From Chara braunii (lineage: Eukaryota; Plantae; Charophyceae), in the NCBI GenBank assembly GCA_003427395.1, contig BFEA01000014.1, forward strand, positions 2,773,461 to 2,836,518: 63,058 nucleotides of DNA, given 5' to 3'. The notes under the pieces are model-generated. The model saw nothing but the letters and a program-made list of their open reading frames with translations. It searched no databases and was not told where the DNA came from. This document shows positions 4,401 through 58,225 of this stretch, piece by piece. Within the stretch, counting starts at the first letter, position 1; each line of letters begins with the position of its first letter. The translations under genes were made by a program, and so were the position numbers.

Positions 4401-4495
4401 CCTCCTCCTCCTCCTCCTCCTGCTCCTGATGCTGATGCTGATGCTGATGCTGATGCTGATGCTGATGCTGATGCTGATGCTGATGCTGACGCTGA

Positions 4496-4552
<57 letters not shown>

Positions 4553-6490: not shown

Positions 6491-6527
6491 TCTGTCTCTC
6501 TTTTTCACCTTTCTTCCCTTCTCCAAT

Positions 6528-23700: not shown

Positions 23701-25374
23701 CGATCCGCCCGCAAGATCGCTACAAATCCGCATTCAAGACACGATACGGGCATTTTGAGTGGATCGTTATGGCTTTTGGCCTCACCAATGCCTCGACGAC
23801 CTTTCAAGCGACAATGACCAACGAGTACCTTGCGATGTTGGACCGGTTCGTACTAGTCTACTTAGACGACATTCTCGTCTATAGCTGGACATTGGAGGAT
23901 CATCTTGAGCACCTTCGACGAGTGTTGGAGACGCTCCGCCGCGCCAAGTACAAAGCCAACCGCGACAAGTGCGAATTTGTCTGGCAAGAGCTGGAATACT
24001 TGGGCCATTTTGTCACACCGGAGTGCATCACTCCGTTGTCAGACAAGATTCAAGCCATCCAAGAGTGGTCGGAGCTGAAGAACGTCACAAATGTTCATTC
24101 CTTCCTTGGCTTAGCCGACTACTATCAACGCTTCATCAAGGGATACTTCGAGATCGTGGCCCCTTTATCCAAGCTTCAATGTGAGGACCGACCATTCAAC
24201 TTCGACGACAATGCGGGAACTTTCTTTTTGGCTCTCAAAGCTACATTGCTATCCACGGAGGTGTTGCGCACCTACGACCCGCTCCTGCCGACACGTGTCA
24301 CTACTGATGCGTCCGCTATGGCATTGGTGCCGTCCTCGAGCAACATGATGGCGTGGAATGGCACCCGATCGAGTACTTTAGCAAGAAAGTGACCGCCGTG
24401 CACTCGATGGACGATGCACGAAAGAAGGAATTATTGGCCTTCGTACACGCGCTCAAGCGCAGGCGGCATTTTCTTCTCGGTCGACGGCAGTTCCGATGGG
24501 TAACGGATAACAATCCATTGGTCTTCTAGGAGACCGAAGACAGTCAATAGCACCATTGCCCGTTGGACGACCTTCATTGACCAGCTTGACTTTTCCCCGA
24601 CCACATTCCAGGCAAGTCAAACCGTTTTGTGGATGCTCTTTCACAGCGTCTGGACCATTGTACCGCAGTCTGCTCAACTTTTCAGATTCACGACGACTTG
24701 TGAGACAACTTCATCCGCGGCTACCAAGTCGACCCCAAGTTTTGCCACAATTACGCAAATTGCTCCTCTCCCAATCTGGCGCCACCGCACTATCGGATCC
24801 AAGAGAGCTCCTTGTCAAGGCACGAGACCAGATGGCAAAGACGCAGCAACGCATGAGCCAACAAGCCAATCGCCAGCGTCTTCCCTGTTCATTCCGCGCC
24901 GGCGACCTTGTCTGGGTTTCCGCCGCGGAATTCAGCCTCGAACAAGACATCTCTTGCAAGCTCCTCCCGAAACGGATGGGGCCTTGGCCGATCGTGGCAC
25001 CCGCTGGGGATGCACCCGAAGGACCTTCTTTCAACATTCAGGTGCTCGCCCACTTGCCCGTCTACCTGGTCTTTCATTGCTCCAAGTTGACTCTTTACAC
25101 GCCAACGGAACATGACGACTTCCCCGGGCGACGATCCCAAGACCCACCCTTGATGGACGGTTTTCAAGAGGTTGGTGACATCATCTCCCAGCGACGCTAC
25201 GACAACAGGCCAACCGAGTACTTGGTGGTACACTTTGCGTACTGCACCCACAAAGCTGACCGTTGGTTGACCCGTGCGGAACTCCAAGCAACAGCTCCAG
25301 ATGTTCTCGCGCGCTACGAATGCAAGATGCAAGGCAAGCCGGTATCTTCGGCTCCACATTGCACCCGCGTCTAG
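20769..25374 (+). pseudogene. Frameshifted gag-pol of element 1
   Basis: Gag-like ORF 21023-21880; protease LLDSCATGNFIS; RT LRLCIDYRKLN, LDLKSGYHQI and YLDDIL; RNase H VTTDAS; GPWPI motif and chromodomain-like FQEVGDII...EYLVVHF...DRWLTRAEL. Confidence 0.92.
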
Positions 25375-25423
25375 GTTCCACCTTCAGATAGTCACCTTTG
25401 CCCTCGACCCCGTTTGACTTCAT

Positions 25424-33875: not shown

Positions 33876-36800
33876 TTAGTCCAAGGTAGGATCTTTACCT
33901 TTCTTATCTCTCTCATAGGCTTGAACTACATCAGGAGCGGTCTCAAGAAGTTCTGTTCGTGTAAACCAGCGGTCATCCTCCGGTTCCTGAAAAGCGAATC
34001 TGACTTTATACTGCTTCTGTGGACGACCTCTACCTCCCGTTCTGAACACATCTTCACCTACGATGCCGTCAATGTCATAATTTCCATCCATGTCCGGAGG
34101 GATCATGGACCTTCGCGATGGAAACTGTTGGCTTGTGGTACAGGGCAACAACTTTGACGCATGAAAAACTGGGCAGGTGTGGAGGTGTGCTGGAATCTCG
34201 ACCGTGTAGGACTGTCCATCCTCTCCGCCTTTAACTTCTAAGACTGGGTAGCTCCTTGGTAAGCAGGCAATAACTTTTGTGAGATGTTTTCCTCAGGAGC
34301 AAACTCCTTTGACTTGACCCAGACTAAGTCGCCTACTTGAAATTGTGATGGGCGACGGTGCTTATTGGCTTGCTCTATCATTCTATGCTGGGCCTTCCTG
34401 AGGTTCTCTACTACGGTAGCAATTTCTTTCTCATGCTCTATCGCAAACTCCCTAGTTCCGGGTGGCAGCCTTTGAATCTGATCCCAGTTGAGTCCCTCGA
34501 ACGGTGTACGTGGTCTAAAGGACTTATGCAATTCGTTGGGAGTGCGACAAGTGGCTAAGTGCACACTGTTATTATAAGCACTGGCTACCTTCGGGAGCAT
34601 CTCATCCCAGTTAACTTGGTCAGGTCTAATGTACATTCTCAGAAACTGCTGCAGGACTTTGTTCATTTGCTCAGTTCGACTGTTGGTCTCTGGGTGACGG
34701 CCAGATGACATCAACAACTTGGATCCGTAAACTCTCATCAACTCTTGCCAGTTCTGACTAGTGAACCTGGTACCCCTATCGCTAACTATAGAAAGAGGTA
34801 AACCATGTTCACTGACCCAATAATCGAAAAACTTTTGTATCACTTAATCTGTCTGTGCCTCGGAAGGCAAAGGAACAAACACTGCATACTTACTAAATCG
34901 ATTAACTATCACCATGACTTGGCTCTTGCCATGCCTACTCCTGACCTTAGCATCCATGAAGTCGATGGATACAAAGTCTCCGAGCCCATCGGGAATAGGC
35001 AAGGGTTTGAGAAGACCAAGAGGGGCTTGCCTAATAGTCTTATTTTGCTGGCAGACCTCGCAACTGCGTACATACTCTATGCAGTCGGCCTTCATACCTG
35101 ACCATATATATGCGCGCATAAGGTTGGCTAATGTCTTCTGCCAACCGAAATGTCCTTCTGTATCATGGCATTCCCCTAGGATCAGGCTACGCATTTCCTC
35201 ACTGCTGGGGACGCACAGACGGTCAACTACATTAGTCTTTTCGAATAACAACCCATCAGTAGTGCGGTAATCTGGTTCAGTCTCTGGAGCCTCCTTAACT
35301 CTTTTGAGGAGATCGCTATAGATGGGGTCCTGCGCATACACTTCCTTAACTTTCTATTGCAGGTCTCTCCCTATATATCGCTCTAAAGTAATCAGCCCTC
35401 CTACTCAGAGCGTCCGCAACTACATTATACTTTCCTTTTACTGGCTTGAGCTCAAAGTCAAACTGATCTATCTCGACGGCCCACCTAGTAAGCTTTGGTG
35501 TCATTTTGGCCTGAGTCTTTAACCATCTCAACATCTCGTGGTCTGAATAGACATTGAAGTTCCTCCCAAGCAAGTAGTGCTTCCGGTGATCTAATACTTG
35601 CTTAAGAGCGTAGAGTTCCCTCTCATAGGTAGATGTCGCTACCTTCTCTAAAGGCATCCTGGCGGACATGAACTCTACGGGCCTATACCCATGACCATCA
35701 TCCTGCTGTAAAACAACACCTATACCATACCGACTTGCGTCAGTGGTGACTACAAAAGGCAAAGACGGATCGGCTACCTTGAGGACTGGATACTCTATCA
35801 AGGCCTTTTTTAACTTCTTTAGAGCCGACGTACAGTCTCTATCCCACTTCCAAATTGCTTCTTTCTTCAGTAACCTGCGAAGGGGTGCAGCGATAGTGGA
35901 GAAGTTTCTGACGAACTTCCCATAATAATTGGCTAGGCCTAGGAATGACCGCAATTCTGTCAATGTGCGAGGCGTTGGCCAATCTCCGATTGCTGCTATC
36001 TTCCTCGGACTTTATGCCATCCCCATCTAAGACGTGGCCCATGTATAGGACTTGCGTCTTGGCCCACTCACACTTCTTTGCGTTGATCTTGAAGTTAGCT
36101 TCTCTCAGCTTCTCCAAGACCTGCCTCAGATGACCCTCATGCTCATGGAGGGTCTTGCTAAAGACTAAGATGTCATCTAAATATACAACTACAAACCTAT
36201 CTAGCCACGGTCTAAACAAATCATTCATGCAACGCTGAAATGTGGTTGGCGCGTCAGTAAGTCCAAAGGGCATCACTATAAATTCGTAATGCCCATACCT
36301 GGTCCTGAATGTCGTCTTGTACTGATCATCAGGATGGACCTCTATCTGATGATAGCCTGATTTTAAATTTGTCTTTGAGAAATACTTGCAACCTTGCACC
36401 TGATCTAACAGATAATCTATACGGGGCAGTGGTTCAATATTCTTCACGGTAACGGCATTGAGACCGCTCTCCCTCCTTGGGAACAAAAAGAACAGGCGCT
36501 CCAAATGGAGATGAACTAGGCTTAATTCAACCCTTCTCAAGGAGCTCATCTAACCGCATACGCAGTTCCTCTAACTCTTTTGGGGACATTTTGTACACGG
36601 CCCCCTTCGGAGTTATACTGCCAGGTTCTATCTCGATACGATGCTGGATCGACCGCGCCACTACTCCTGCGGGCGGCTGAGCTAAATCCGTATACTCCTC
36701 CAACAACTTGGCAATGACTGGCTCGATAGGCTTCTCTTCCTTAAGCTCAGTAACGGGCCTAACATAGGCTGCAAAGACCTGTTCTCCTAATTGCTCCTTC

Positions 36801-37417
36801 CTTACTAATCGCGCAAACGCGGGAGCACTGAGACAATACGCTACGGAGTTGTCTACTCCTGACACATGGAACAGCCGAGCAGTCTTGACTGCGCCTGATG
36901 GGCTAGGGAGCCTACACTCATGCTCTCTCAAGTGAAGTGTGGCCCCTGCTGCCTCTCCCCAATCCATTCCTATGACCATGTCGAAAGGAAGGCTGTCCTC
37001 TACGAGGAGAGTGAGGGAATGGAAAACTTTCTCCACCTTCCCATTCTTCTCTAGGCGAAAATACGCCTCGACTCCCTCTATGTAATCCTCGACTCGCATA
37101 GTGCGATTGTCTGCGAGGATACTGACTACAGGGTCTTCTAACTTCTGGACTTTCAGATTCAACTTCAGCTTCTGCATCGCTTTCCTGCTGATATAACTGC
37201 GGGTGGCCCCACTGTCTATAAGGGCCCCTACTCTACTTCTAAAGACCTCTACATCTGTTAAGACTAGTTGCCCTTTTGCCTCCTTCTTCATCTTGGCCCA
37301 GGCAGGCATCCTCTCCTTCAACTCTCCTGCCACGCATGTGAGGGAAGTGCCTAGAGAGACTATAACACAAGCAGTCTTTGGACAGTTGTCTTGGCACTGG
37401 CCAGCAACCTTTGCCAT
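33876..37417 (-). pseudogene. pol of element 2 (protease, RT, RNase H, integrase, chromodomain), broken by frameshifts and stops
   Basis: ALIDSGATRSYI; LKSGYHQI and YLDDIL; TTDAS...YSDH; integrase zinc-binding CHDTEGH...CEVC; SIDF and SDRG...HPET; chromodomain YDIDGIVGE...QYKVRF...DDRWFT. Confidence 0.93.
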
Positions 37418-37499
37418 AGAAACATGTGGTTTGGGAGTTCCTGTGTGGTGCGCGCACTCTTCTCCACATGGTCTAGGGATAGGGGCAGTTGCAACCCCT

Positions 37500-39370
37500 A
37501 CCGGCGGTTGCCTTTTGCTGCTTGTGCGGCGAACCGGGCCTCTTTGTACTTAGGGCAGTATTTAATAATATGGCCAGGATCACCGCAATAGATACACCGA
37601 TCCTGATCTATCCTCCTCTGCCTCAGTGTTTGTTCTAGGCCCAGATCCTCCCAAGGCCTACCTTGCGGCAGACCAGGGTGCCATCCACTCCTTCTGCGTG
37701 ACCGATTGTAACTAGAGCGGTTTTGCGGGGCACCTTGACCCCTACCTCCCGCTTGGCGGCCTCCTCTGTCGCCAACCTCCTGATCGCTCTGTCCTCAACC
37801 ACCTGAAGCCTGACCCCCTTGGCCCCGACCTCCTCCTCTTCCTCGTGACCTCCCTCCAGCCGCAACAACAGCGTAAGTCATCCCCTGACTATCGCCACTG
37901 TCATCCTCCTCCAAGCCCCACTCTATCTGGCTGTAAGGGACCTGTTCCATACCACCCTCATGTAGTGTAAGGTTCAGGTGATCCTTGCCCTTAACCTGAC
38001 CTGAGATGGTACAACCCTTCCACTTCTTACCCTTATCGAGGTCCTTATGCCAGAAAGTGGAAACTGGCATGGACCATGCTTCAAACGCTACCACTTCCCT
38101 ACTCAGAGTATCGTAGGTCATGGTAAACTCCCGACTCTTCTCAAAAAAGTGCCCGCGCAAAGGTTCGGGCATGGCACGATAGAACATGTTGACTAACTGG
38201 GTTTCAGTAACCCCATGACCAGGAACAGCTACCAACTCATCGATAACTCCCTTGAGTGCTCTAGCATTCCTCCATTGGCGGGAATGGATGGTCTGCAGTT
38301 TGTCTGAAGCTCTAACACACGCAGGGGGGTAATTTGGGAGTACGCGACCATATCATTTTCACACTTCGCAGCACGACAGAGCGATATGCTCCTCAGGAGC
38401 TATCTTCTGGAGGTGTACGTAGGAGTTTACATTTGCCTCCCAGTTATCAAAGTTCTCCTCCTTCCTCCCGCTGTAGGAATCAGGGAACTTCACCTTCACG
38501 GGTACTCTACGAGGACGAACTTCCTCCTCCCTAGGAGCAACAAGTTTCGCGCCTTCTATGGCCCCAGTGCAGAATCGCTCTGTGCTCTCCATCCTGGCTT
38601 TTACTTTTGTGCCCACGTGCATCATCATTTCTCGTGCAAACTCCCTGAACCCTATGCGTATGGACCGCAGAGCTACATCTTGGCCCCATGCAAACTGATA
38701 TTGCTCTTCTTTGGCCCTAGCTAGGAGTTCATTATTCCTAGCCATCACATCCATCTTCCCCTGCAGGTCCGCCTGCGCTTCCATCTGCGCCCTTAGCTGC
38801 TTCACTGCCTCCAATTCTTTCGCAGCTTCGCTGGCCTCCTCCATTCTTTTTTTCTTCTCCCTGGTCAATCGCAACTTCCACTCCAACTTCTTCTCCTTTT
38901 TATATTCTGGTGTTTTAAGGGATCCTCTTCTGCTTCCCACTCTTTCACTACTGCCTCCTATTCTGCCTTTGATACATACATCATTGCCTCCTCGTCCTCT
39001 CCCAGGGATAGATTAGCGACCCACTCAGACACCTTCTTTTCAAACCATGGGTCCTCCTCCTTCTTTGTGCCACTGGATTCCCCTCTGTCCCTGAAACTCT
39101 TTCTGAACAGGGGAACTTCCTCTTCTGCCTTTTTCTCCTCTTCTTTTTTTTCTGCCTCCACTGCTTTCAACCTTCTTCCTCCTCCTTCAGCCTTTCCAGC
39201 TCTTCCTCCAACTTCTTTTCTTCGCGGCTTGCTCCTCCAACAAGACCAACTTCTTGGCCTGCTTCACCACTACCCTCTTCTCTTTCGTGGCCTTCTGTTC
39301 GGCTAGAATCCTCGTGGCCTCTTCCTCCTGCTCCCTCGTGTAGCGAGTAGTACTAGCACCACCCCTCGTG
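37500..39370 (-). pseudogene. gag of element 2 with CCHC zinc knuckle
   Basis: Coiled-coil fragments, FPDSYSGRKEENFDNW, LVNMFYRAMPEPLR. The minus strand at ~37553-37597 reads RCIYCGDPGHIIKYCPK (CX2CX4HX4C). Confidence 0.85.
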
Positions 39371-40054
39371 TCAACTCTACACGTGAAGGTATTCCAAAAG
39401 CCTAATGGAAAGAGGCGACGCCAGAGGGTCCCCCACAAGGAGAACCCCACGAGCAAGCCGTACATGGGGTAGTCATCCATGGTGTTGATGCACGACAATG
39501 ACTGTCCCACTCCTCACCACTTAGACCTACCCACTAACTGTCTAATTGACTCTCTAAGGACTACAGGATCTTGGTAGGACCCTGTCAACTATGGTCTCTA
39601 GCCTAGACCTATTACTAAGCTGTCACTACAGGACTCAATGCTGATCAGGAGGCATTTAAGGAGATCCCCCGTAACTCCTCAGGAATTATTTAACGTCCCA
39701 GACAGGACGACGCGATCAGCAAGTCCTCTCAAGACTTAGACAGCTTGTTGTGCACCCCACAACTCGGATTTTGGGCCTACTATGCCACACAGAGCAGCCC
39801 GCCGGTCTGTNCCGGTCCTTGGGAGGGTTTGTCCTCCGGGTCCGTCAGTCGTTAGACACGGCCTTTAGCCCTACTCAACCTGTGTGGGTTCGGTCAACAA
39901 AGCTCTACGACCTCATACACAGAGTTCCTATCACCTGGACAGACGAGACTCAATGCAGAAAGAAGAGACAGACAGACTCAACAAGTACCATGGGTGAGTG
40001 CACATCCATAGGCGAGGGGATAGGCTGAAGGGTTGCGAGAATATACCGACTCCA

Positions 40055-40290
40055 GCTTGGTCAATTTCGTGGTCAACAGCTCCGGTCAATGCCTTGGTCA
40101 ACGCTTGGTCAACGTCTTGGTCAATGCTTGTTCAACGCCGGTCAACCTCTCAGTCAACACCCCGGTCAACCCCCGGTCAACTCCTGGTCAACTCCTGGTC
40201 AACTCCTGATCAACTCCTCGTCAACACCTTGGTCAACCCTGGCCAACTCCTCGATCAACTCCCCGGTCAACGTCTTGGTCAACGTCCAAC
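40055..40290. repeat. Degenerate ~11-bp GGTCAAC tandem repeat in the element 2 leader
   Basis: About 20 copies of (T/C)GGTCAAC variants. Confidence 0.85.
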
Positions 40291-40516
40291 TCGTTTATGG
40301 CTGCCGACCCCTTGTCTCCTTTCAACCTTCACTTCGCCTTCTCCCTCCTTCCTTCTTTCTCACTTTCTTCTCCTTCACCCCGGCTACGTCTTTCTTTTCC
40401 TTCGTCTCTTCCTTCTCCTCTACTTCATCTTCCTTCTCCCTTATAACCCTGTGTCCGAGCTTCGACGGTTATGGCCGCCACCTCCTGTCTTGGACCGCAC
40501 AACCAATCTTGTATCG

Positions 40517-40560
<44 letters not shown>

Positions 40561-40616
40561 NNNNNNNNNNNNNNNNNNNNNNNNNNNNNNNNNNNNNNNN
40601 NNNNNNNNNNNNNNNN

Positions 40617-40706
<90 letters not shown>

Positions 40707-40821
40707 TTGTCTTCTTTGCAGGTACGCAGCACCTTTCTTCTATGGCGGACCTTCCTCCTTCGATGGCGCGGCTACAACTATGGCGCCCAGACAATGATAG
40801 CGCATGGGATAACGAGAACCA

Positions 40822-40833
40822 GCTCTGATACCA
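40822..40833 (-). promoter_or_regulatory. Primer-binding site (tRNA-iMet) of element 2
   Basis: The + strand GCTCTGATACCA is TGGTATCAGAGC on the minus strand, 1 nt from the LTR. Confidence 0.93.
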
Positions 40834-40834
40834 A

Positions 40835-41777
40835 TGCAATCAGACTCACTTTCTTCTTCACTTCGCATACATGCAAACAATGGCAATTCACACTGGCGCC
40901 AAGCTCCCACTCAAAGCTCAAAGATATGGAAAACGAGAACACAGTTCAAATGCCAACTCGCTACATCCCAACTGTCATCACTGTGTCCAACACCACCGTT
41001 CGCACACACTCAACTCTGGATCACCCTGAATACCCCACACACGCTCGCTCACTGCATCACACACGCATACACACATTAACATCTAACACTAGCTATGGCG
41101 GCTATGGCCGCCGGCCACTACTAATTATGGCGCACTAACTTCTTCAAGCCCACTTCGACCTCGGGCATCTGCAGACCACCTCGCACAAGACGCTCGGGTA
41201 GCGCTTCCGCATGCCTCAGGCAGGAATGAATGAATGGCTGGGCGCTACCTCTTGATTTATACTTCTGTAAGTCACTGGTCTGCCCTTTTCCACCGGGCCC
41301 ACGGTGCAGACAGTCCCTCATGGTACTTGCTGACTGTGCAAAGTGAGACTGGGACTGGGTACTGCTGACTAAGCGAAGTCGGACTCACCACTTGCCCACT
41401 TGCCTCTGGTCTGCTGTGAGTAACATGAGACAAAACTCGAAAGGCCACTTCCAGACCTTCCGGAAGTCTGTGGACTTGGCCTTTCGGGACTGTAGCAGCT
41501 ATGACCTTGACATTTCAGGACTGTAGCAGCTACGACCTTGACCTTTCAAAATTGCTACAGCTACGACCTCTGCACAACTATGACCCCTAGTCGACAGACC
41601 TACAGATCGAACCCCTGCAACTACACAGACCTACGACAGGCAACAATCAACTATCAGAACACAGGTCACGGGTTCAAACACACAGGGGTCGACTTGATAC
41701 TGTACATGGGTGTGATAAGGTCTAGGGTTCGAGCCCTGGGATCTGCATCTGCTATTGCTAAGGTGAAAACCGTTTCA
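40835..41777 (-). repeat. 5' LTR of element 2
   Basis: Direct repeat of 32857-33837, adjacent to the PBS. Confidence 0.93.
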
Positions 41778-43179: not shown

Positions 43180-43568
43180 TATAAAGGCTGAAGGAAAGAG
43201 GAAAAAGAAAAAAAGAAAGAAGGAAAAAAGAAAAAAGAAAGGGAGGAGGAGGAGATAAAGGGAATGGAAGGAACAACGGACTTGAACTGGCTAACTTAGA
43301 AAAAAGAACAGGAAAGGATCGGGACCGCAACGCTTCACCTACAGGCAGAAAGAGGATTCACCTGTCAAGCGAAGGATAAACAAACAATATGGCTCAAACT
43401 CTGCACCTACACAACAAAAACCTGTTCAGTATAAGACAGAAAAGTGGGGGGAAACGGAGTACCCGAAGGACCAGACACCGTACGGTATCCTCGAAAGCAC
43501 CAGATAATCTGACACAAGGGATATAGCATGGCAAACAGAGCTTATAATACCTTATATATATATCATAT

Positions 43569-44033
43569 TGTCAAACAGAGCTTATATATATATCGTATTG
43601 TCAAACAGAGCTGCCCGGTAAACCGAAGGCAGAGAGGGAGAAGAGGACAAAAACGAGGGGCTGTGACAAACTGTTTCGTCGGATTTTATGTATATCGTCA
43701 AACAGAGCTGCCCGGTAAACCGTAGGCAGAGAGGGAGAAGAGGCTGTGACAAACTGTTTCGTCGGAGTTTCACCGGATCATCAGGAGGCTGAACCCTCAG
43801 CAGTCTGCAGAATCCCCCAACTGATTACACTGTAAGTGATAATCCACCTTAACCCCGGCTGTGATTAAGCATCAACGACTGCCCGACAACTGATACCCTT
43901 AGGTGGGCTTCAACCAAATGCATATATATATATCGTCACAAACAGAACTGCCCGGTAAACCGTAGGCAGAGAGAGAGAAGAGGACAACAAACGAGGGGCT
44001 GTGACAAACTGTTTCGTCGGAGTTTCACCGACT

Positions 44034-44103
<70 letters not shown>

Positions 44104-44553
44104 TCAAATAGAACTGCCCGGTAAACCGTAGGCAGAGAGGGAGAAGAGGACAACAAACGAGGGGCTGTGACAAACTGTTTCGTCGGAGTTTCATATATAT
44201 ATATATCGTCAAACAGAGCTGCCCAGTAAACCGTAGGCAGAGAAGGAGAAAAGGACAGCAAACGAGGGGCTGTGACAAACTGTTTTCTCGAAGTTTCACC
44301 GACTCATCAGGAGGCTGAACCCTTATATATATATATATTATGCAGCCCCTCGTTTGTTGTCCTCTTCTCTCTCTCTGCCTACGGTTTACCGAGCAGTTCT
44401 GTTTGTGACGATATATATATATATATATATAGTCAAACAGAGCTGCCCGGTAAACCGTAGGCAGTGTGGGAGAAGAGGACAACAAACGAGGGGCTGTGAC
44501 AAACTGTTTCGTCAGAGTTTCACCGACTCATCAGGAGGCTGAACCCTATTTGA

Positions 44554-44556
<3 letters not shown>
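43569..44556 (-). mobile_element. Cluster of ~9 variably 5'-truncated copies of a hammerhead-containing short element inserted in (TA)n
   Basis: Copies at ~43569, 43599, 43695, 43933, 44101, 44206 and 44432, plus inverted copies at 44343-44411 and 44548-44556. Nearly all share the end TCGTCAAACAGAGCTGC next to (TA)n. Outlying copies lie at 58060-58154 and 60319-60333. Confidence 0.75.
43749..43808 (-). ncRNA. Type III hammerhead ribozyme, probably inactive copy
   Basis: Minus strand: GCAGACTG-CT-GAGG-GTTCAG-CCTC-CTGATGA-TCCGG-TGAAACT-CCGAC-GAA-ACAGTTTGT. The cleavage triplet is GCT instead of GUC, and the base of stem II is mutated. Confidence 0.75.
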
Positions 44557-44593
<37 letters not shown>

Positions 44594-45511
44594 AGACTTT
44601 ATACCCACGGCAAAACGTGGAATAGTCCCCATGGATCATGCTGACATATTAAGATTCTACAATCAGAGAATACTCGGAATCCTGAATTACTAGCGTGCCA
44701 GACTTGCCAGTTAATGTGGTGAGGGCAGCCGCGCGCGCGGTGTGGTCATCACCTATGCTCTGCGTGAGTTTGTGTGCTCGCTTGTAAGACACTGCGTTAA
44801 AAAAAGAAAAGAAAAGAAAAGAAAAGGCTTTCCTGAGGTACCGAGTCTTATCGACTGTATTGAGCCATGCCATTGGGCAATCTGCTTTATACCGATTTCC
44901 CTGAGGAGCAAAGCGACGATGACGTGGTATAAGATACTCCATAGCTCTACCTCCACCATGCCTGATTGGCTCTGTTATTGTGAAAGAATCTATGATGCAG
45001 GTACATGATCCCTCCGACGATTCGTTGGTGGCGGCGGTGAAAAACGTTTTAGGGGCGGCCACACCTTTCCTGCTGCTTGTATGACCTCTGCATGACTGTT
45101 GTTGCCTCGAAAGGCTGGTTTGCTTCATGTGTTACTCATCTGAATTCAGAAGCGGTGGTCCCCCACATGCCATGGTCCTGACGAAGACGATGACACGGGT
45201 CACTGACGAAATTTGTGCACGCTGGGAACAGCAGTCACTCTGAGGAAACCCCTTTATCATCCTTTACTGGGCACTTTTCGTGTCGCATTAAGTTTCAAAT
45301 CTGACACCACGTACTGTTTGGAAACCCCTTTTTCCCCTCTCGCATTTCCCCCCCCCAACGGAATAACCTCACCCCGATATCTCGGACCCATCTGTGCGGA
45401 TGCTTTCATGACCCCACTTACCTTTCCTGTGTAATTGCCAGCAGAATACCTCTAGATATATCCTCCTTGGTAATTGCCTGCCCTGAACCCCTCTGCTTCA
45501 CTTGCTCCCCC

Positions 45512-45600
45512 CTCTAGAATACCTCTAGAATACCTCTAGAATGCCTCTAGATATTTCTAGAATACCTCTAGAATACCTCTAGAATACCTCTAGATATTTC
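45512..45600. repeat. 11-bp tandem repeat CTCTAGAATAC
   Basis: About 8 copies, directly visible. Confidence 0.9.
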
Positions 45601-46344
45601 GGTACCTATGAACCTTGGTGTCGGCAACACCGTGAGCAATGGGGTGCCACAGTCTCAACGACAATGACAGGAAGTGGAAGTGTCGAGTCATTGTTTAGTT
45701 CGATTGATCTTATCGGCTGGGCTTGGATGGGAATGGACCAGATTCAATTGATCTTATCGGGGGCATGTTTATGACAGCGATGGAGTGAAGGGGGAAATAA
45801 ACGGGTGGGACGAACCAGATTCAATTGCAGGATGTTTTGTCGTCAATACTTGTTGCCTTTTTTTTTCTTTCTTTCTTTTGACAACTTCGCAGGAAGGGGT
45901 CACTTGAGGAGGTGGTAAGAGCATCCTCCTCAAGTGGCCCCTCTGATGAAGGCTCCATCTATCTGGACTGACAGCTCTTACGATACTCAAGGTTGCTGAA
46001 ATGGTATACTAGGTTCTTCGCTTCCATGTTCCTGATGGCTACAGTCCCGATAGCTTCGAAGCAGGCTGAAACCTGTGGATAAAGGAAGTAGCTTCACGCC
46101 TTCAACCGATCCTAGCAATTGCTTTCAAAAAATCCTAGGCCCCTCCGCTGTGTAACCATTGGAAGAATAGTCCTACATATTCCCCATGATGATGGCTTGT
46201 ACAAGTTGTACCCCACTAGTTCAATTTCCGCAACGCTTTTTCTTGTGCTCAACTCTTACGACAAGGCTTGCTCGATTCTGCTTCCACCAGGGCTGGGTCA
46301 TGCCTGTCACTGCTGCTTGGTCCAATTTGCCCTCGATACTGGTA

Positions 46345-46400
46345 GGGCAATTGTCGGGCAATTGTCGTGGCAATTGTCGGGCAATTGTCGGGCAATTGTC
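46345..46400. repeat. 11-bp tandem repeat GGGCAATTGTC
   Basis: About 5 copies with a palindromic CAATTG core. Confidence 0.9.
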
Positions 46401-47496
46401 CTGAGTGCCGGTCACACAGAGGTAGGATAGTAGGGATAGGGGGTGCGCTAGGAGTATTGATGCAAAGATGGGATGAGAGGTAGCATCGTCTTCTCGGGAC
46501 AGCCGTGGCTGACCGCTTCCGGTAATCACCCTCTGCCTAGAGACTGTCCTCTACAACACCCTGGACTTTCAAGGAAAATAGTTCAAAATACAAATCTGTT
46601 TTGCTGGTTTTGCGGCCATACATGTTACTTCTTAATCCTTTTTGAATCTGAGATGAAGAGTTCGATGATACTCAGAATGGGCAATATCCAAGGCTGAAGG
46701 GCCATGTGAATTTGGAAGCAAGCTTCTTCATTTCAGTGTTTACCCCTTCCCCCACACCCCTTGGTTATGTTTGGATTGGGCGAAGGATGGAGTGTATTAA
46801 AACAAAAAAAAATTAAAAGGGGTGTGGTGGGGGGGGGATAGAGGGGAATTTCACTCTGATATTTCCAGTTGGTCTCTACAATCGCTTACGTGTCAATATT
46901 CCTAGATATTCCCCACACCGACGCCTCACACCCCACCTTTTGACCTTTCTCTTATGTCTTGTTCTCCGCAACGGCGCTCTTTCTCCTGCTTCGAACGCAT
47001 GCAACATTAAATACGGGACTATTTCCGGGAAAAAAAAAAAGAAAAAAAAAAGGGATTACATCATTGCACTGTCAGGACGACATCTTACACAAAACTGGCT
47101 TACGACTCCTCGCGCACTTTTGCATCATTATTTATTATCCCTCTACAACGAATTGCTACACAAGACGTCACTGCCAAATAGCAAGGGATGAGCACGATGC
47201 AGTTGGGATCTGGGTTACGGACTGGGGAAAAGGGTGAAATGATGAGAAAAGAAACTAGGATATAACCAGGGGAAGGGGAGCTGGGAACAGCTTGGAACGA
47301 CTATACACGAATGGACATGGTACCATACTATTCTTGTATGTCCTCAGGTCTAAAAACGACTACGACTACTAAGCATGATCTTGATGTTTACATCGGAAAT
47401 GTCGATGCTTCCCTTCCCCCTTCTTTTTTTTTCTATCCTCACACATGTACTGGCACAGCCATGCCTTTCTTGTGGAGTTGATACAACGCACATGAC

Positions 47497-47561
<65 letters not shown>

Positions 47562-48353
47562 CCAGTTTTTGGATTGTTTGTTTTTTCTGCCTCCCCACCA
47601 ATTTTTCTGAGTATTTTTGTATGCCCAACTGAGCACCTTTAAGTAGTGCCAAACAGTCGGTGGTTCCTCGTTTGGAGTGCCTACTACACGCTTATGGGGG
47701 CTTCTCAGTTCGGGATGTCTGTGTTGCCTGTAGGTGATGACAGATGCTCGTCGGAGTGTCTCCCTGGCTCAGTGGGTGGTGGGAACCAACAGTCTGTGGG
47801 GTTTACCTGTGATGTGAGGGTGATGTGCTGCTTTGCTCCGTGTTGGATGTGTGTACGGCCTCGTCTGCGCTCCGCCACTGCTTTGCTGCCCATTCCGCTT
47901 GCCTCGCAGGTCGTTCTTGGCAAGCTGCTGTCTTCGCTGTGTGGTGTGGCTGGGTTGTGGTGTTGCCTTACGCTTCGCTGCTCCGCTGTCGTGCCGCCCT
48001 TCCGCTGGTCGTGCCTTCCGTGTACTTCGCTTGCGCGCCGTGTGGTTCGCTTGCCATGTTGGTGCTTCACAGCATGGTTGCTCTGCAACTTGTCCGCTTG
48101 CCCTGTCGTCCCTTGCAGTGTGGTTGTCTTGGTGGTGTTGCCTGGTGCTTCACTGCTTGGTTGCCGTGCTGCAAGTCCTGAGTGCCATGTCGTTCCTTGC
48201 AGTCGTTTTTGGCGCTGTGCAGCCGTGTTGCGTCTACTGCGTTGCCTGGTGCTCCGCAGGGTTGCGGCCCATTGCTATGTTCCACTTGGGGACAGTCTGC
48301 CTTCAACAAGGGTCAAAGGGTACATGACCCGAACCATGAATACGGGCATTCCT

Positions 48354-48412
48354 GCATATTCTCGAGGGTTCAGCCTCCTGATGAGTCGGTCCAACTCCGA
48401 CGAAACAATCTT
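48354..48412 (+). ncRNA. Type III hammerhead ribozyme (core intact, stem III imperfect)
   Basis: ATATT-CTC^GAGG-GTTCAG-CCTC-CTGATGA-GTCGG-TCCAACT-CCGAC-GAA-ACAATCT; predicted cleavage after 48363. Confidence 0.8.
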
Positions 48413-48421
48413 GTCATCATC

Positions 48422-48475
<54 letters not shown>

Positions 48476-49778
48476 GTGCTTGCCTTGTGTGCTGGTTGTT
48501 GTAGTTTCCCTGCCTTTTGTGCTTGTGTTGTCTGCTCTCGCGCCTCCCCCGTGCCCTCTAATCTTTGCGTTGCCATGAATCCTTTTGCTTTCCCCGTGTG
48601 CCTGTTGTGCCTTCTTTGTGTTGCCTTGAATCCTTCTGCTTTCCCCGTGTGCCCGTTGTGCCTTGTCATCCAACAGCTCAATGCCTCTCTGCCCCTCGAC
48701 TTCGTCGACTGCTGGTTGTTGTTGTCGGCCTGCCTTGTGTGCCTGTGTGTTGTCCGCATTAGGGGACGAGCCCTTCGCCGCTAGGTAGCAATGAGACCAC
48801 GAAGAACGTGAAAATACATTTGCCCCAGTAAAAGTCGGTCCTACCACGCTTGGGGCATGCCATACCTGCACAGTTACGGAGTACAAGGTGCGCCGGTGGC
48901 CTTTCATCGGAGATTATTATAATCATAAACTGACACACATACACAAAATCAGTTTTATGTTTGTGTGTTTTCCTGTTGTTTCTGTCCTCCCCCTGATCTT
49001 TTTCTAAGTACTTTTGCTTACCCAAACTGAGCACCCTTTGGTAGTGCCAAACAGTCAGTGGTTCCATTTCTGGAGTGCCTGCTGCAATATTAGGGGGGGC
49101 ACTCGGTTCAGGGTGTCTGTGTTGCCTGTGGGTAATGACGGATGCTCGTCGGAGAGTCTCCCTTGCTCAGTGGGTGGTGGGAACCAACAGGCTGTGGGGT
49201 TCAGTCGTGATGTGAGTAGGTCATGTACCGCTTTGCTCCGTGTTGGATGTGTGGACGGCCTCGTCTGCGCTCCACTGCTGCCCCTGCTGCCTGTCCCGCT
49301 TGCTTCGCATGTGGTTCTTCGCAGGTTGATGTGTTCAATGTGTGGTGTGGCCGTGTTGTTAGTGTTGCCTTGCGCTTCACTGCTCCGCTGCCTTGCTGCC
49401 CTTCCGCAGGTCGTGCCTTCCTTGTTTGCTGCTTGCGGGCCTCGTTGGATGGTTGCCTTGTTGCTGGTGAGTGCCTCGTGCTTCGCTCCATGGTTGTCGA
49501 GCGGCTGGTCCGCTCACCCTGTCGTCCCTTGCAGTGTGGTTACCTTGCTTGCGTTGCCTTGTGCTTCACTATACGCTTGCCGCGCTGCACGTCCTGCATG
49601 TCATGTCGTTCCTTGCAGTCGTTTTTGGTGTTGTGCAGCTGTGTTGCCTCTACTGTGCTGCCTGGTGCTCCACAGGGTGCTGCCCGCTGCTATGTCCCGC
49701 TTGGGGACAGTCTGCCTTCAACAAGGGTCAAACAGTCAAAGCGTTCATGACCCAAACCATCAAATACGGAGAATCCGC

Positions 49779-49834
49779 AGATTGTCGAGGGTTCAGCCTC
49801 CTCATGAGTCGTTGCAACTCCGACGAAACAGTCT
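49779..49834 (+). ncRNA. Type III hammerhead ribozyme (all stems intact, core G5>C)
   Basis: AGATT-GTC^GAGG-GTTCAG-CCTC-CTCATGA-GTCG-TTGCAACTC-CGAC-GAA-ACAGTCT. Stem III is AGATTGT/ACAGTCT; predicted site after 49786. Confidence 0.8.
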
Positions 49835-50210
49835 ATCATCATCAGGCTTTATTTTTTTCGGTCTTTCGATTTTGTGGGACTCAAATATTTTTTTGGTTTG
49901 CCTGCCCGAACATGCCGTCTTCCCTCTCGCCGCCTATTGTTCACCTGCTGGTCTTCGCATCTTTTGGGAGTTGTTTTTTTTGGGTTTGCCAACTTTGCCT
50001 GTGTGTAGTTTGCCCTCCCGCCTCCCCCGTGCCCTCCATCCTATGTGGGACTCTTAAGGAAGCTAGTCATGATAAGCCACGGATGTATGAGGTACCTTCA
50101 GAGAAGTAAAGTGGCATCCGAGAGCGTTCGTTTGGACATGACCAGGGCCTGGTGTACCACTGTGGTGGTAAGATACATGACATCGATTTTGCCATGGGAT
50201 CTGATTTTCA

Positions 50211-50273
<63 letters not shown>

Positions 50274-53200
50274 GCGCTCCACAGATGCAACCATTCACAG
50301 GCACAGGCAAAACTCCCGGTAGGCCTATGCCTTTTACAGGCCCAGGGGAGTTCTTTGCAGGCCTGAGCCAAACTGAGGGTCTGGCCACAAATCGTACCAA
50401 TCACAGGCCCAGGCAAAACTCAAGCCTAGCTTTTAACAGGGCCAGTCTGGTTGTCCTAGTTGGTATACACATAATGTTCATTTTCTCCATTTGCTGCTTG
50501 TGTGGCTTGTGAGCACCAGAACACCCAGTTTTTTTTCACAACCGGGCAACACTCAGAATTGGGTTTTTCAGGCCTGTGTTTTTTACAGGCCCAGGCCTGA
50601 GCTTTTGGCAGGCCTGTGCAACTCTTAAGGCCTTGGTAAGATGTCCAAACCCCCTCTCATTTGAGGAATTTGGTTTCCGATGAGTCGCGATGACCGATAC
50701 CCCATTCCAAAAAAAAAAAAAAAAAACATTGAGGAATATGCTTTCCAATGACCAATAACCCATTCCAAAAAAAAAAAAAAAAAAAGGTAAGATTACTAAG
50801 GATTTTTTTTTTTCTTAAAAATATTATGTGGTAGCATCTACGCAATGTTGGTTTTGCTCTCTTGCCGCGTCACGCCTTNNNNNNNNNNNNNNNNNNNNNN
50901 NNNNNNNNNNNNNNNNNNNNTTTTTTTTTTTTAAACTAAGCTACATATAGTCTTCTCTGAATTCTCTCCATCATACCTCACGCTACCTACCTAGATGCCT
51001 AGAGTCTGATCCCACTTTTTTTTTTTTTTTTTGGTCTGATCGCACTTCTTATAGGCAAGGCACTTTTTTAATAAATTTTGGGATCCCACTTCTTTCCGCG
51101 AGAGCTGGAGGTGGCCCTTTTTTTCAAAGAAGTGGAAACGGCCTAGTATGTGGCAGTGCGAGCGCGATTTGAGGACCGGTAGTTTTTCCAAAAAGCGAAA
51201 GACGCCACCCCCGTACCCTGCACCGTGAAAGAAGGTGCCCTTGGTTTTTTTTTCCCCCTTTTTTTTTCCCTGATGTGCAGGCCATCGGATCCTCGAGGCG
51301 CCACAAGATAGTGCCGCTCCGTTAGGAAAATTCCCGCAGAGGTCGGGCATGTGGCGTCACGTTTTTCTTTCACGTTCCGTGCGCTGTGTCTCCACCTTTT
51401 GCGACACTTTTATGTTCTTTCGAAACAGAAAAGAGGTGGGATCATAGTACCATCATACCCTTAGTTTATTTACAGACCTTGGCAGAACTCGGCGCTGAGC
51501 TTTTGAGATGTCATGACCGAGTTCTTTAACTGACGCTGATTTTTGCGAGGCCTGAGCTTTTACAAGGTTCTGCGAGCCAAGCTCGGCCGTTACACCCACG
51601 AACAGTTTGAAATATGAAATATGAATCAGACCCAGGTTAAAGTCCAGGTGCAATCAAATGAACAGAAAAAAATAATAAGAATCAGATCCAGGTTCAAGTT
51701 CAGGTTCAATCAAAAAAATAATAAGAAACAGAAAAAATAATAATTCTGAATTAAGTTCAATTAACTGGGGCCGGTCCACATTCAATGATGATGGTATCTC
51801 AAGGCCATCACCTTTTTATAAGGAAAAAGAAAAAGAAGAAGAAAAAGAAAAAGAAAGAGAAAAAGAAAAAGAAAAAAAGAAAAAGGGTTTCACATGCCCC
51901 ATTATTGCTTGTGCCTTATACATGAGCATGCCTGAGTTTTTCTTACAGGCCTGAGCAAAACTCAGCCCTGAGACTTTTAGGCAGGGCGTCATGACTCGGT
52001 TCTTTCGCTGAGGCTTGCCACCCCACTGCCCGGCGGCTGGAAAAGTTTTTTTGCCGTGGAAGGCCAGGCCATTTTAAAACCCCACTTAGCCACCAGGAAA
52101 GCAGTTTTTCCAACCCCCAACCCCCTAGTGTAGTTTGCAACACCACTGACCAGAAAAAAAACATCACCCAGCAGAGCAGGAAAGAAGGAAGGGGGGGGGA
52201 AGGGGGAGGGGGAGGGAGTGGGGTATTCCTTCTGATGGGCGGGAGGATGTGTGGTCCAATCGACAATGCAGGGGACCGTTATGTGAATCAAATGGACATT
52301 CTTAACCGAACTCAACTGATTCGGGAGGGACCCCTTCGGGTTTCCCTTTTTGGAAGAGTGGCACTGTTCCCAGTGCCGTTTTTTAAGTGGTGGATTGAAA
52401 TCTCTACCAATTTTTTCTTTTTTCTTTTTTCTTTTTTTTTTTTTGGGAAAATCTACCAATTTCTTTCAAAATGCCTTTACCTGTTTTTTTTTGGTGGCCA
52501 ACCTGGTTTTCCACCCGCCGGCCAGTGGGGTCCAAGCCTGAGGGCTATTTTTGCAAAGCTGAGCTTTTACAAGGGGTTTTACAAAAGCGGGAGGAAGACA
52601 CTCTTTGTCGTCGGAACCAGGCTGGTCGGCACTGGGGAAGTTTGCATTGCTCTGTAACCCTAGCGCAGGGGGTATGAGATCGGCGGAGTTTTGGTACGAG
52701 GACGGAATGCTCGGACTTACGTTTTTTTTTTTTGATTGATGAAGGGGAGGTGGAAATAGTCCGAGGTTTGGATTGTGGTTGGGTGGATCATAGGCGTTTT
52801 TTTTTCTGAGAACTGTAGTTGTTCTTAAGGTTTTTCTCATAGTTTTTCGCAGGTGGTTTGGTAGTGTCGACTGATTGTTTCTCTTATTCGCCGAAGGCGG
52901 GTAATGGCCCCGGGATTTGGAATGTGTCAAATAATCTCTCACTTGTACTTCAAACTTCAAAGGGATGCTGAGCCCGGTTCTCAGCACATGATGCTCCCTA
53001 CATAATCTCACTTGTACTTCAAACTTCAAACTGATTGTTCAGTTAATTTCTCTGCACAACAGTCTTGCACGGCCGGCCCGCCCGCCCAGGAAAATAGGGT
53101 GACCTGGGCGGCCCGGCTGGTAGCCTAGTTTACAACAACAACAACAAAAAAAAAAAAAAAAAAAAAAGGTTTTAATTTTGAAGGCTTTTGCACAAGTGTC

Positions 53201-54474
53201 CTTCAGGGCATCCATTACAATTTGGAACAATAAATTGTCCGAATTTTGAACAATAAATGGTCCCAATTCATATTGTTCGAAATTCGCGCATTAAATTAGC
53301 ATGGCCCCTTTGCAAGGAAGAGGACATGCATAAGGCAACAAAATGGTCCGAATGAAAAAGAAAAAGAAAAAAGAAAAAAAAAACAAAAAAGACTCCGGAG
53401 TCTGAACAGACAAAACATCCACAAGCCTCTGCTCGAAGACGGCCAGGCGCGCGGGCAAAGTTGCCATCCTGCTGAATGACGCTCTCTCCGTCAGTCGTGT
53501 GCCTCAAAGACGGCCAGGCGGGTGAAGCTGCCATCCTGAAGAACTCGAGTCCCCTCACACAAGGACTTTTTTGACTCGGCTTTCGACGTGATTGCTGTCA
53601 GGTGCATCCAAGTCTCTGGCCATCATTGCATTCAGATACATTTAAGAAAGTGCTAGTGTGAATGTCCTCAAAAGACGAGTTAGTGTGTGCACCTCAAAGA
53701 GGGCCAGGCGGCCGAAGCTTCCATCCTCGAACCACCAGTACCTATCGCATCTTTAGGCGTTGATTCGAAGGCTGAATCTGTGCGCCGCGCGGATCCGCCG
53801 GGGGGCCTAAGACCCCTCGGGGTACTGGTCGGTTTAAGAAGAGTCCACTCACATGAGGACTTATTCCACTCAGCTCTCGACACGATTGCCGTCACGTGCA
53901 CCCGAGTCTTCCCATAATTGTGTCCCGATGCGTTTGAAAAAAAGTGCTCGTGTTGTGAATACAGCCTCAAAAGATGACTACGTGCGTGTCACAAATGCAT
54001 GCTACGTAGGCCTCGCTAGCAACCACAGCTGCAGCACCTGCCAGCACTTCAGTTGCCCGCATGCCCACCACTTCCCGTGTCGACGCATCCACGCAGAGAA
54101 GGGCAATCAAATCAACAAACTCAGAACACAAGAGATGATAGTATCATGATACACGTCACAGTCACGATATAAGGTATAGAAGCGCGCCATGTCATCAATC
54201 GCTGCATCCAAAACTGCAGCTGAAAGTAAAATGGCTTCTACACATAAGAAGGTTGTGTGATTGCGGCCGGTCTGTTTCTGGTTATCAGCACTTTATTACG
54301 GTATGTACCAGTGAAACTTCCAATGATAAATCAGAAGGAGCATATTCTACCAACTAGATTTAACTACAGTAGCTAGGATTAAATTAAATAGCTAGGCTTT
54401 AAATTCCTTTGATCGTGAATACAAAAAAAAAAAAAAAAAAAAAAAAAAATCACTCCAGTGACTCCATCTATATC

Positions 54475-54512
54475 CTGTCTCTTATACACATCTAGATGTG
54501 TATAAGAGACAG
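54475..54512. other. Nextera mate-pair junction adapter (assembly artefact)
   Basis: CTGTCTCTTATACACATCT+AGATGTGTATAAGAGACAG, followed by an exact copy of ~47796-47890 and then an N gap. Confidence 0.98.
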
Positions 54513-54641
54513 GTGGGGTTTACCTGTGATGTGAGGGTGATGTGCTGCTTTGCTCCGTGTTGGATGTGTGTACGGCCTCGTCTGCGCTCCGCCACTGCTT
54601 TGCTGCCNNNNNNNNNNNNNNNNNNNNNAGATATTCCTTCT

Positions 54642-57032: not shown

Positions 57033-58225
57033 CTCTCTGTGTGCGTGACAATTGGCACTCTGTGCTTATCGTCCAATAGTTCGTCCCATTGCCGTCCAGC
57101 CGACCTCCACACCACATCCACTTCAAGCTGGACGAGGGACCCAACCCACCTCCCTTCACATCCACTCTCTGCGTGACACGTGGCACTCATTGTCTCTCGC
57201 CCAATAGTACGTCCTGTGATGCTGTAGGCGGCCTCTACGTGGCACTTAATGCTGGCCCATTATCGTAGCAATCAAGACTTTTTCGCCAAGGGTGCACTCT
57301 CATCGACCGATGCCATGTCCAGTCCATGCATTACATCAACCTATTTTTAATCTATGTCGTTGACTACCGCATCCCTTGGTGCCTGACGTGGACCAATCAC
57401 ACTCCAGGTGACTCCACCAATATATGTCACTCGTCGTGCCTTGAAGTATTCTCGATGTATGATTGATGATTACCGCATAATTGCGCGTATCCCTTGGTGC
57501 ATGCCGTGAACAGGTCATCCTCCACCAGTGTATCAGCCATCCTGCCCCGCCAGCTCACGGACGGCCACCTCGTCGTCATTACCCGTCATCATGCTCATGC
57601 TCGATCACTCGCCTCAAACAAACGTCGAATGTGCGGTCGCTCATCGCTGGCCCGTGAAAAGGCAGAGGATGATGTCGCACATTATACGGTCACTGATCGG
57701 TCCCATCCTGCCGGATCGCCCACCACCATCACAAGCCATTCATCATCTCGACCTGTCCGTGTGGGACCGTCCCATTCGATTCATGGTTGCATACCCTGCC
57801 ACCTGTCTCCGTGTGGGACGCGCCTCACTGCGACCACCGGTGTCCCAAATATAGCCCCGGATCATCATGTCGAGTGCCAGGGAAATATCCGCCTGTCGCC
57901 CGAAGTACCGACGCCCGGCACCGGTTTCTGGGAAAATTTTACAGCTACTACTGGTAGCCACCACCACCTGTCCATCGGTCAGAGGTTCGCCATCAGGATG
58001 TTCAGTCCTCAGAGACACACAAAACTTTCATACTAGTTCATAATACCAATACCAATATATCGTCAATTTAACAGAGCTGCCGGCTAAACCGTAGTAGGGG
58101 CAGAGAGGGAGGTAGAGAAGAGGACAACAAACGAGCAGCTGTGAGAAACTGTTTACCATAAATTAAATTTGCCTAAAAGGACACAAAAAGTGATTATAAC
58201 AAAGATCCATATGATATGATGCAAA

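Follow-up and report, generated by a model that had tools for sequence, protein, structure and literature searches.

The hammerhead ribozymes of plant retrozymes with long terminal repeats (LTRs) are of type III, and those of Penelope-like elements (PLEs) and of animal non-LTR retrozymes are of type I (2026 preprint, 10.64898/2026.07.22.740005), a division that reviews also draw. Plant retrozymes carry their hammerheads in LTRs of 300-400 bp and have a primer-binding site (PBS), a polypurine tract and 4-bp target-site duplications (Cervera, Urbina and de la Pena 2016, PMC4918200). The animal elements form regular tandem units of 170-400 nt with type I hammerheads, give rise to RNA circles (Cervera and de la Pena 2020, PMC7229834) and are now proposed to be non-autonomous derivatives of PLEs (PMC7229834; 10.64898/2026.07.22.740005). 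In Chara braunii, three types of Chlamys-clade PLEs are known; a canonical hammerhead is present in two (in Chlamys-2_cBra as a "3'-HHR"; Craig et al. 2021, PMC8557442). Here we describe a 63,058-nt stretch of the C. braunii genome (contig BFEA01000014.1, positions 2,773,461 to 2,836,518; hereafter the window) in which two families of repeats, A and B, carry a type III hammerhead. These elements are real, transcribed, non-LTR and tied to microsatellites. We give a probability of roughly 0.55 to the reading that both families are decayed, non-coding, non-LTR, non-autonomous, target-primed retroposons of C. braunii, probably moved by Penelope-like elements of the Chlamys/PLE-X kind.

Several properties of the C. 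braunii PLEs and their relatives bear on this reading. Canonical hammerheads are carried by the Chlamys-2 and PLE-X families of this species (PMC8557442). Chlamys elements show an insertion bias toward (CA)n and (C)n, and Naiads toward (TA)n; Chlamys elements are also distributed genome-wide, are 5' truncated and form tandem and inverted pseudo-LTR structures (PMC8557442). Non-autonomous Chlamys derivatives in green algae have 3' ends in common with autonomous families, an example being MRC1 of Chlamydomonas (PMC8557442). The first-pass annotation of the window, made from the letters of the sequence, had called its hammerhead repeats a candidate new system. As a class they are not new, for hammerhead-bearing, microsatellite-targeting, 5'-truncating PLEs and their non-autonomous derivatives have already been published (PMC8557442). 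The hammerhead type of the Chara families is not stated in the text of that paper, and those PLE hammerheads for which we found a type stated, including the ones from Selaginella, are all type I. Possible novelties are the type III topology outside an LTR context and the setting of the 5' end of an element by its ribozyme.

A type III hammerhead module at five sites

Direct reading of positions 43400-50400, together with string and pattern searches, located a hammerhead (HHR) module of 56-71 nt and type III topology at five sites in the window. A 21-nt core string, GAGGGTTCAGCCTCCTGATGA, gave five matches at up to three mismatches, compared to 0.01 expected in shuffled sequences, and the pattern CTGATGA-N(4-30)-GAAAC gave six, compared to 0.5 expected. 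The three sites noted in the first pass were recovered at 43751-43806 (minus strand), 48356-48411 (plus) and 49779-49834 (plus), along with two further copies that are cut at the 5' side. The module consists, in order, of an open helix III of 7 bp, the cleavage triplet, helix I (GAGG/CCUC, 4 bp, with the 6-nt loop GUUCAG), CUGAUGA, helix II (GUCGG/CCGAC, 5 bp, with a 7-nt loop) and GAAA. Loops close helices I and II but not helix III, which gives a type III topology, as had been proposed.

With matches reported by E-value, Hammerhead_3 (RF00008) was the top Rfam family at all five sites, also within its clan. The best match was at 49779-49834 on the plus strand (38.4 bits, E 1.2e-5), followed by 44501-44551 on the minus strand (26.3 bits), 48362-48405 on the plus strand (24.6 bits) and, on the minus strand, 44198-44331 (23.5 bits) and 43751-43806 (19.9 bits). 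No further hammerhead variant was found when the whole window was scanned in this way.

The first-pass annotation had listed the complete module at three sites. The motif is present at each, yet no copy in the window has an intact ribozyme; all are damaged or incomplete. The hammerhead of the longest family A copy, A1-long (43751-43806, minus strand, 19.9 bits), has GCU in place of a cleavage triplet, a broken base of helix II and a loss of 3 of 16 pairs. In the first family B copy, B1 (48356-48411, plus strand, 24.6 bits), neither the core nor helix I or II is damaged and the triplet reads CUC; cleavage is predicted after 48363, but two of the seven helix III pairs are mismatched. The second, B2 (49779-49834, plus strand, 38.4 bits), has fully paired helices I and III and the triplet GUC, with cleavage predicted after 49786; its core reads CUCAUGA and 1 of 16 pairs is lost, at the top of helix II (U49812). 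The two remaining copies, a5 (module at 44273-44325, minus strand) and a7 (44497-44547, minus strand), lack the 5' strand of helix III. The CUGAUGA core is intact in A1, a5, a7 and B1 and also in L002, a metagenome contig described below. The NUH rule for the triplet is kept in B2, B1 and L002 (GUC, CUC and GUA, respectively) and broken by the GCU of A1.

The family as a whole is better preserved than its copies in the window. Raw oligo-dT RNA-seq reads filed under the same organism label were mapped at 85% likeness to 48480-50205, a span chosen so as to leave out the extended tracts of (CA)n, (TA)n and T. In 93-98% of the reads from the family, G stood at 49803 (C>G) and at 49812 (T>G), which restores CUGAUGA and GUCGG, so that the majority sequence has an intact core. 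At 49803, where B2 departs from CUGAUGA, the share of G was 93-95%. With G at both positions the minimum-free-energy fold was the hammerhead (-16.9 kcal/mol); all 16 pairs are formed by this majority sequence, as they are by L002. In a six-sequence alignment the named fold paired 81% of cells, compared to 33-60% when the partners were slid.

Between families A and B the module keeps 88-93% identity, more than the 79.5% that B1 and B2 show overall. Only about 71 nt around the module are common to the two families, which bears out the earlier remark that they have nothing else obvious in common.

Family A ends in (TA)n and begins at variable positions

Family A has a unit of about 125 nt whose sense strand is the minus strand of the window. 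Nine copies and fragments have a common 3' end, ...CTGTTTGACGA, followed by (TA)n, the terminus being GACGA(TA)n. Measured on a reference unit (44417-44560), their 5' ends lie at positions 46, 80, 93, 104, 106, 114, 131 and 131, and one copy extends beyond. Reference position 131, the starting point of copies a5 and a7, is A1.2, 1 nt 3' of the predicted cut. The chance that two of nine 5' ends would fall at the cleavage site is about 0.02, a rough estimate made by hand and not computed by a tool.

A (TA)n tract (43531-44590, both orientations) contains a cluster of about nine copies or fragments, where copies with a constant 3' end and variable 5' ends are joined head to tail through (TA)n, with one inverted copy and a head-to-head junction at 44546. 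In A1-long (43696-43921, minus strand) the hammerhead follows a leader of about 115 nt and is itself followed by a tail with a 13-nt deletion. It is the sole family A copy that continues upstream of the cleavage site, and its ribozyme is broken; its leader matches the consensus of RNA-read loose ends before 49777. In a5 (44207-44325, minus strand) homology starts at A1.2 (44323), immediately behind (TA)n and one nucleotide 3' of the predicted cut. Homology in a7 (44431-44547, minus strand) also starts at A1.2 (44547), at a head-to-head junction with an 11-nt inverted 3' fragment at 44546-44556. The inverted copy, a6 (44341-44412, plus strand), is 5' truncated and forms an 80-nt hairpin with a7. 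Outside the cluster, an older 5'-truncated copy at 58055-58154 (minus strand, 77% identical) ends in GACGA(TA)3 and a short 3' fragment at 60301-60342 (plus strand) ends in GACGA(TA)n; each has merely a short (TA)n.

The 5' truncation with partial tandem and inverted insertions in this cluster follows the insertion style of PLEs. The fixed 3' end, the 5' ends at the cut and the single run-on copy with its broken ribozyme fit a self-cleaved RNA copied 3'-end first by target-primed reverse transcription. The earlier description of non-LTR, 5'-truncated, microsatellite-anchored copies with a type III hammerhead was supported, 5' truncation being shown for family A.

The hairpin formed by a6 and a7 (44331-44509), a near-perfect stem of about 80 bp around (TA)n, had sub-threshold Rfam matches to several families of plant miRNAs, at 45-62 bits where the gathering scores are 84-200. 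We rejected a miRNA gene at 44331-44509: the matches are sub-threshold and the stem comes from the inverted copies. The hairpin could be a source of hairpin-derived small RNAs.

Family B adjoins (CA)n and has a variable tail

Family B is larger, with a conserved core of about 0.93 kb that adjoins (CA)n and is followed by a variable tail. A (CA)32 tract at 47497-47560 adjoins the left end of B1, whose core (47561-48436, plus strand) stops at a run of 51 T (48424-48474), about 25 nt beyond the hammerhead. The B1 tail (48475-48760, plus strand) is A-poor and variable, and only the patch at 48524-48558 resembles B2 and L002. B2 has a (CA)n remnant (48925-48940) in front of its core (48941-49860, plus strand) and an A-poor tail (49861-50050, plus strand) in which the common patch lies at 50002-50036. 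A second (CA)n tract (50208-50271) closes the pair, so that both parts of the first-pass statement on microsatellites, anchoring of one family in (TA)n and bounding of the other by (CA)n, were correct. In the alignment of B1 (47546-48436) with B2 (48933-49858) 79.5% of positions are identical; over the module the figure is 90%. The plus strand of B has an AT skew of -0.445, the minus strand being A-rich.

A scan of a metagenome collection with 23 nt of the module identified a genuine family B copy, L002 (BFBZ01011546.1, 1,534 nt), that is 80-84% identical to both copies in the window. Its hammerhead has an intact core, the triplet GUA and all 16 pairs, and scores 37.1 bits (under 48.5, the curated gathering score of Hammerhead_3). 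In B1, B2 and L002 alike the core starts at the (CA)n tract, continues for about 25 nt beyond the hammerhead and has a T run at its end, and the tails of all three are A-poor with one patch in common. Thus counted, 9 of 9 family A copies end in (TA)n and 3 of 3 family B copies (B1, B2 and L002) adjoin (CA)n. A second metagenome match, L001, is a bacterial contig of high GC content; Rfam found no hammerhead in it, and we took it as a chance 23-mer match. Scans of viral and prokaryotic collections with the module gave no matches.

The spacing of the B copies brings to mind retrozyme-like circular RNA elements without LTRs, in which head-to-tail hammerheads would free unit-length RNAs (about 1.4 kb for B) for ligation to circles and reverse copying to DNA, a route that has been proposed for animal non-LTR retrozymes. 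The distance between the hammerheads of B1 and B2, which have the same orientation, is 1,423 nt. L002 has an exact 86-nt terminal redundancy, therefore a tandem or circular unit of 1,448 nt, and is either a collapsed tandem or a circular assembly. The module was also read on both strands in RNA-seq, its bins being covered at a depth of 260-816. Yet the sequences lying between one tail and the following (CA)n, 48760-48925 after B1, 50050-50207 after B2 and the spacer of L002, are not homologous when compared. For this reason B1 and B2 are neither a unit-length tandem nor an LTR pair, and they are only 80% alike. Family A copies end in GACGA(TA)n rather than at the cleavage site, and a tandem junction yields the same reads as a circle junction. 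Longer transcripts include A copies of either orientation, so that reads on both strands are expected in any case. We regard circular elements as distinctly unlikely and retain target-primed retroposition as the likelier explanation.

One further piece that resembles family B lies within 54470-54629. Here a palindromic adapter pair, CTGTCTCTTATACACATCT then AGATGTGTATAAGAGACAG, stands directly before a 95-nt piece (54513-54607) that is 84% identical to the family B core, and an N run follows. We take the pair to be the Nextera/Tn5 mosaic-end adapter, and the arrangement looks like a mate-pair or gap-filling assembly artefact and not a true insertion.

Both families are transcribed

RNA-seq reads showed that families A and B are both transcribed. 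Depth over the B core was 100-440, with an excess of about 10:1 of pairs with the first mate on the plus strand, a bias that is uncalibrated, the library type not being on record. The unique spacers had a depth of 0-12, and 49872-49987 a depth of about 0. For family A, 778-1681 reads per run ran on from the module into the A tail and 115-347 per run came from the A-long leader.

Among the contigs assembled from one run were truncated modules lying directly after (CA)n or after repeats rich in A and C (loose ends before 49793 and 49800), which suggests that the genome has more copies that begin with the hammerhead and are inserted in (CA)n at other places.

The elements lack LTRs, a primer-binding site and coding sequence

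Neither LTRs, TG..CA ends nor 4-bp target-site duplications were found for A or B. No PBS for tRNA-Met was present within or beside either family at up to two mismatches; a polypurine tract was not searched for. There was no tRNA-like head in A or B by ARAGORN and no small-RNA match in Rfam, and a short interspersed element (SINE) with a tRNA, 7SL or 5S RNA head was rejected on these grounds. Open reading frames (ORFs) in or near A and B had no Pfam domain and no protein homologue. Those of 310 and 347 aa on the plus strand of B, likewise without domain or homologue, are long because the A-poor strand has few stop codons. The absence of a PBS and of recognizable ORFs that had been noted in the first pass held in the PBS, Pfam and homologue searches.

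These results bear on whether B1 and B2 might be the two LTRs of a plant-type retrozyme. They are direct repeats with a type III hammerhead in each, and the host belongs to the streptophyte lineage. However, there is no tRNA-Met PBS near them; the only exact match in the window (40822-40833, minus strand) is part of a Gypsy element. With lengths of about 0.9-1.2 kb, the repeats are 80% alike and separated by a unique spacer of 165 nt, compared to LTRs of 300-400 bp in plant retrozymes; they lack TG..CA ends, and family A has no terminal repeats. A plant-type LTR retrozyme is largely refuted and very unlikely.

Neighbouring DNA

The remains of Gypsy-type LTR retrotransposons, with RVT_1, RNase H and aspartyl protease, lie at 21000-25400 (plus strand) and 34200-41000 (minus strand), the latter including the PBS match just mentioned. 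In the unique DNA between A and B are two short tandem arrays with an 11-nt period, at 45500-45610 (TCTAGAATACC-like) and 46340-46400 (GGCAATTGTCG-like). At 1430-6526 (minus strand) an ORF of 1,698 aa, probably a host gene, contains an FUSC / aromatic-acid-exporter / ALMT-like membrane domain (residues 827-1040, Pfam E 1e-23).

Discussion

Movement in trans is the natural reading of families A and B. The motif, the anatomy of the families, their place in microsatellites, their transcription and a majority sequence with an intact core are observed; that the RNA cleaves itself in vivo, that it is copied by target priming and which elements help it are inferences. Family A would act like a SINE without a tRNA head. 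The precursor would be an RNA of about 240 nt, with a leader, the hammerhead, a 65-nt tail and (UA)n, that cuts itself after GUC. The cut RNA, about 125 nt long and with nearly the whole ribozyme at its 5' end, would then serve as template for target-primed reverse transcription at (TA)n sites, with copying starting at its 3' end, GACGA(UA)n. The outcome would be copies with truncated 5' ends, pile-ups in tandem and inverted order, and full-length copies that start at the cleavage site. Such new copies would be without the 5' strand of helix III and, because this strand is missing, could not cut themselves. Family B, with its 0.93-kb core and variable tail, carries the same module and would land in (CA)n. 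The reverse transcriptase (RT) and endonuclease would most likely be supplied in trans by a hammerhead-bearing Chlamys-2 or PLE-X element of this genome.

The elements resemble the published C. braunii PLEs (PMC8557442) in host species, in a hammerhead in the terminal region, in a microsatellite bias that includes (CA)n, and in frequent 5' truncation with head-to-tail and inverted insertions; helper-dependent non-coding derivatives are also known. They differ in that A and B have no RT or GIY-YIG ORF. Moreover, (TA)n targeting is tied to Naiads and not to Chlamys, whereas family A lies in (TA)n.

With plant LTR retrozymes (PMC4918200), A and B have in common the type III hammerhead and the fact that they are non-coding, non-autonomous and transcribed; loop 2 of the Rfam type III consensus, UGAAA, matches loop 2 of the A/B module. 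Unlike those elements, A and B have truncated 5' ends and junctions with microsatellites, as is typical of target-primed reverse transcription, and no LTRs, PBS or 4-bp duplications were found for them. Animal non-LTR retrozymes are similar to A and B in being non-LTR, non-coding and hammerhead-bearing, in their head-to-tail arrangement and in their presumed PLE helper. In contrast, A and B have type III hammerheads and exist mostly as truncated copies, and most A units are without part of the ribozyme.

A ribozyme at the 5' end of a retroelement has reportedly been described before, in that HDV-like ribozymes are said to stand at the 5' end of R2 and RTE non-LTR retrotransposons (work attributed to Eickbush and Eickbush in 2010 and to Ruminski et al. 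in 2011). By analogy, the hammerhead of family A may act in the same mode, cutting just upstream of itself, removing the upstream transcript and setting the 5' end of the template, so that full-length copies would start at the cut. The ribozymes of R2 and RTE are of another class and are complete in new copies, whereas A copies lose one strand of helix III.

Several observations weigh against the reading that A and B are hammerhead-bearing retroposons moved by PLEs. At gathering thresholds, Rfam had no match in the whole window, all five hammerhead sites (19.9-38.4 bits) falling under 48.5 bits; the Rfam check proposed in the first pass named Hammerhead_3 at every site without reaching the curated score at any. 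In the six aligned sequences seven changes were one-sided and none was compensated on both sides of a pair. As the control with shuffles was not exceeded either, covariation is uninformative at a depth of six sequences. Read ends did not pile up at the cleavage site in the oligo-dT libraries; these are not a suitable assay of cleavage because oligo-dT selection would lose cleaved RNAs that have no poly(A). The window has no PLE ORF and no autonomous PLE, its only RT matches being Gypsy-type RVT_1, and A and B were likened to Chlamys-2_cBra and PLE-X by description and not by consensus sequence. Finally, the polarity of B is awkward: its constant end is the (CA)n side and its variable end the tail side. 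With the (CA)n side fixed, by analogy with family A the minus strand would be the B sense strand, and because of this fixed end and the 10:1 bias, in a library probably of the dUTP type, the main RNA of B would be antisense to the hammerhead.

The first two of these points count in favour of a chance resemblance to a hammerhead inside ordinary repeats: all scores are under the gathering score and two-sided covariation is absent. Against chance, 11 of 11 core nucleotides, three helices and an NUH triplet are present (E 1e-5), the majority sequence of the family is free of the defects that are private to single copies and the module is conserved across two otherwise unrelated families. A fortuitous hammerhead is extremely improbable.

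The polarity of B suggests another arrangement, in which only family A uses the ribozyme and B is a separate minus-sense retroposon with a 3' (UG)n end, variable 5' ends and an antisense, non-functional module. In all three B copies the end next to (CA)n is the same and the opposite end differs, a parallel to the fixed 3' end of family A, and the excess of first mates on plus over the B core means minus-strand RNA if the library is of the dUTP type. The A-rich composition of the minus strand also points this way. On the other hand, the module is 90% conserved between B1 and B2 against 79.5% overall, the family majority retains an intact core, the hammerhead-sense strands of A and B are alike in their A-poor composition and the strand call is uncalibrated. 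A minus-sense B with a non-functional module is unlikely in our judgement.

More tentatively, we suggest as a possibility that one streptophyte alga related closely to land plants has type III hammerheads in Penelope-style, microsatellite-targeting non-LTR retroposons and that these ribozymes define the 5' end of the element. Should the hammerhead of a Chara PLE prove to be the same module, the finding would reduce to non-autonomous members of a published family. Family A is in itself a natural test of ribozyme use, in which copies of cleaved RNA should start at the cut and copies with a dead ribozyme should run on. If the possibility raised here is true, type III hammerheads in non-LTR, target-primed, microsatellite-linked elements would break the rule that assigns type III to plant LTR retrozymes and type I to PLEs and animal non-LTR retrozymes, and would join the two groups of hammerhead retroelements. 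Chara lies near the base of the land-plant lineage. Its elements would then be a missing link for the descent of plant retrozymes, and perhaps of viroid-like hammerhead RNAs, from PLE-associated ribozymes, and a PLE origin of plant retrozymes would become testable.

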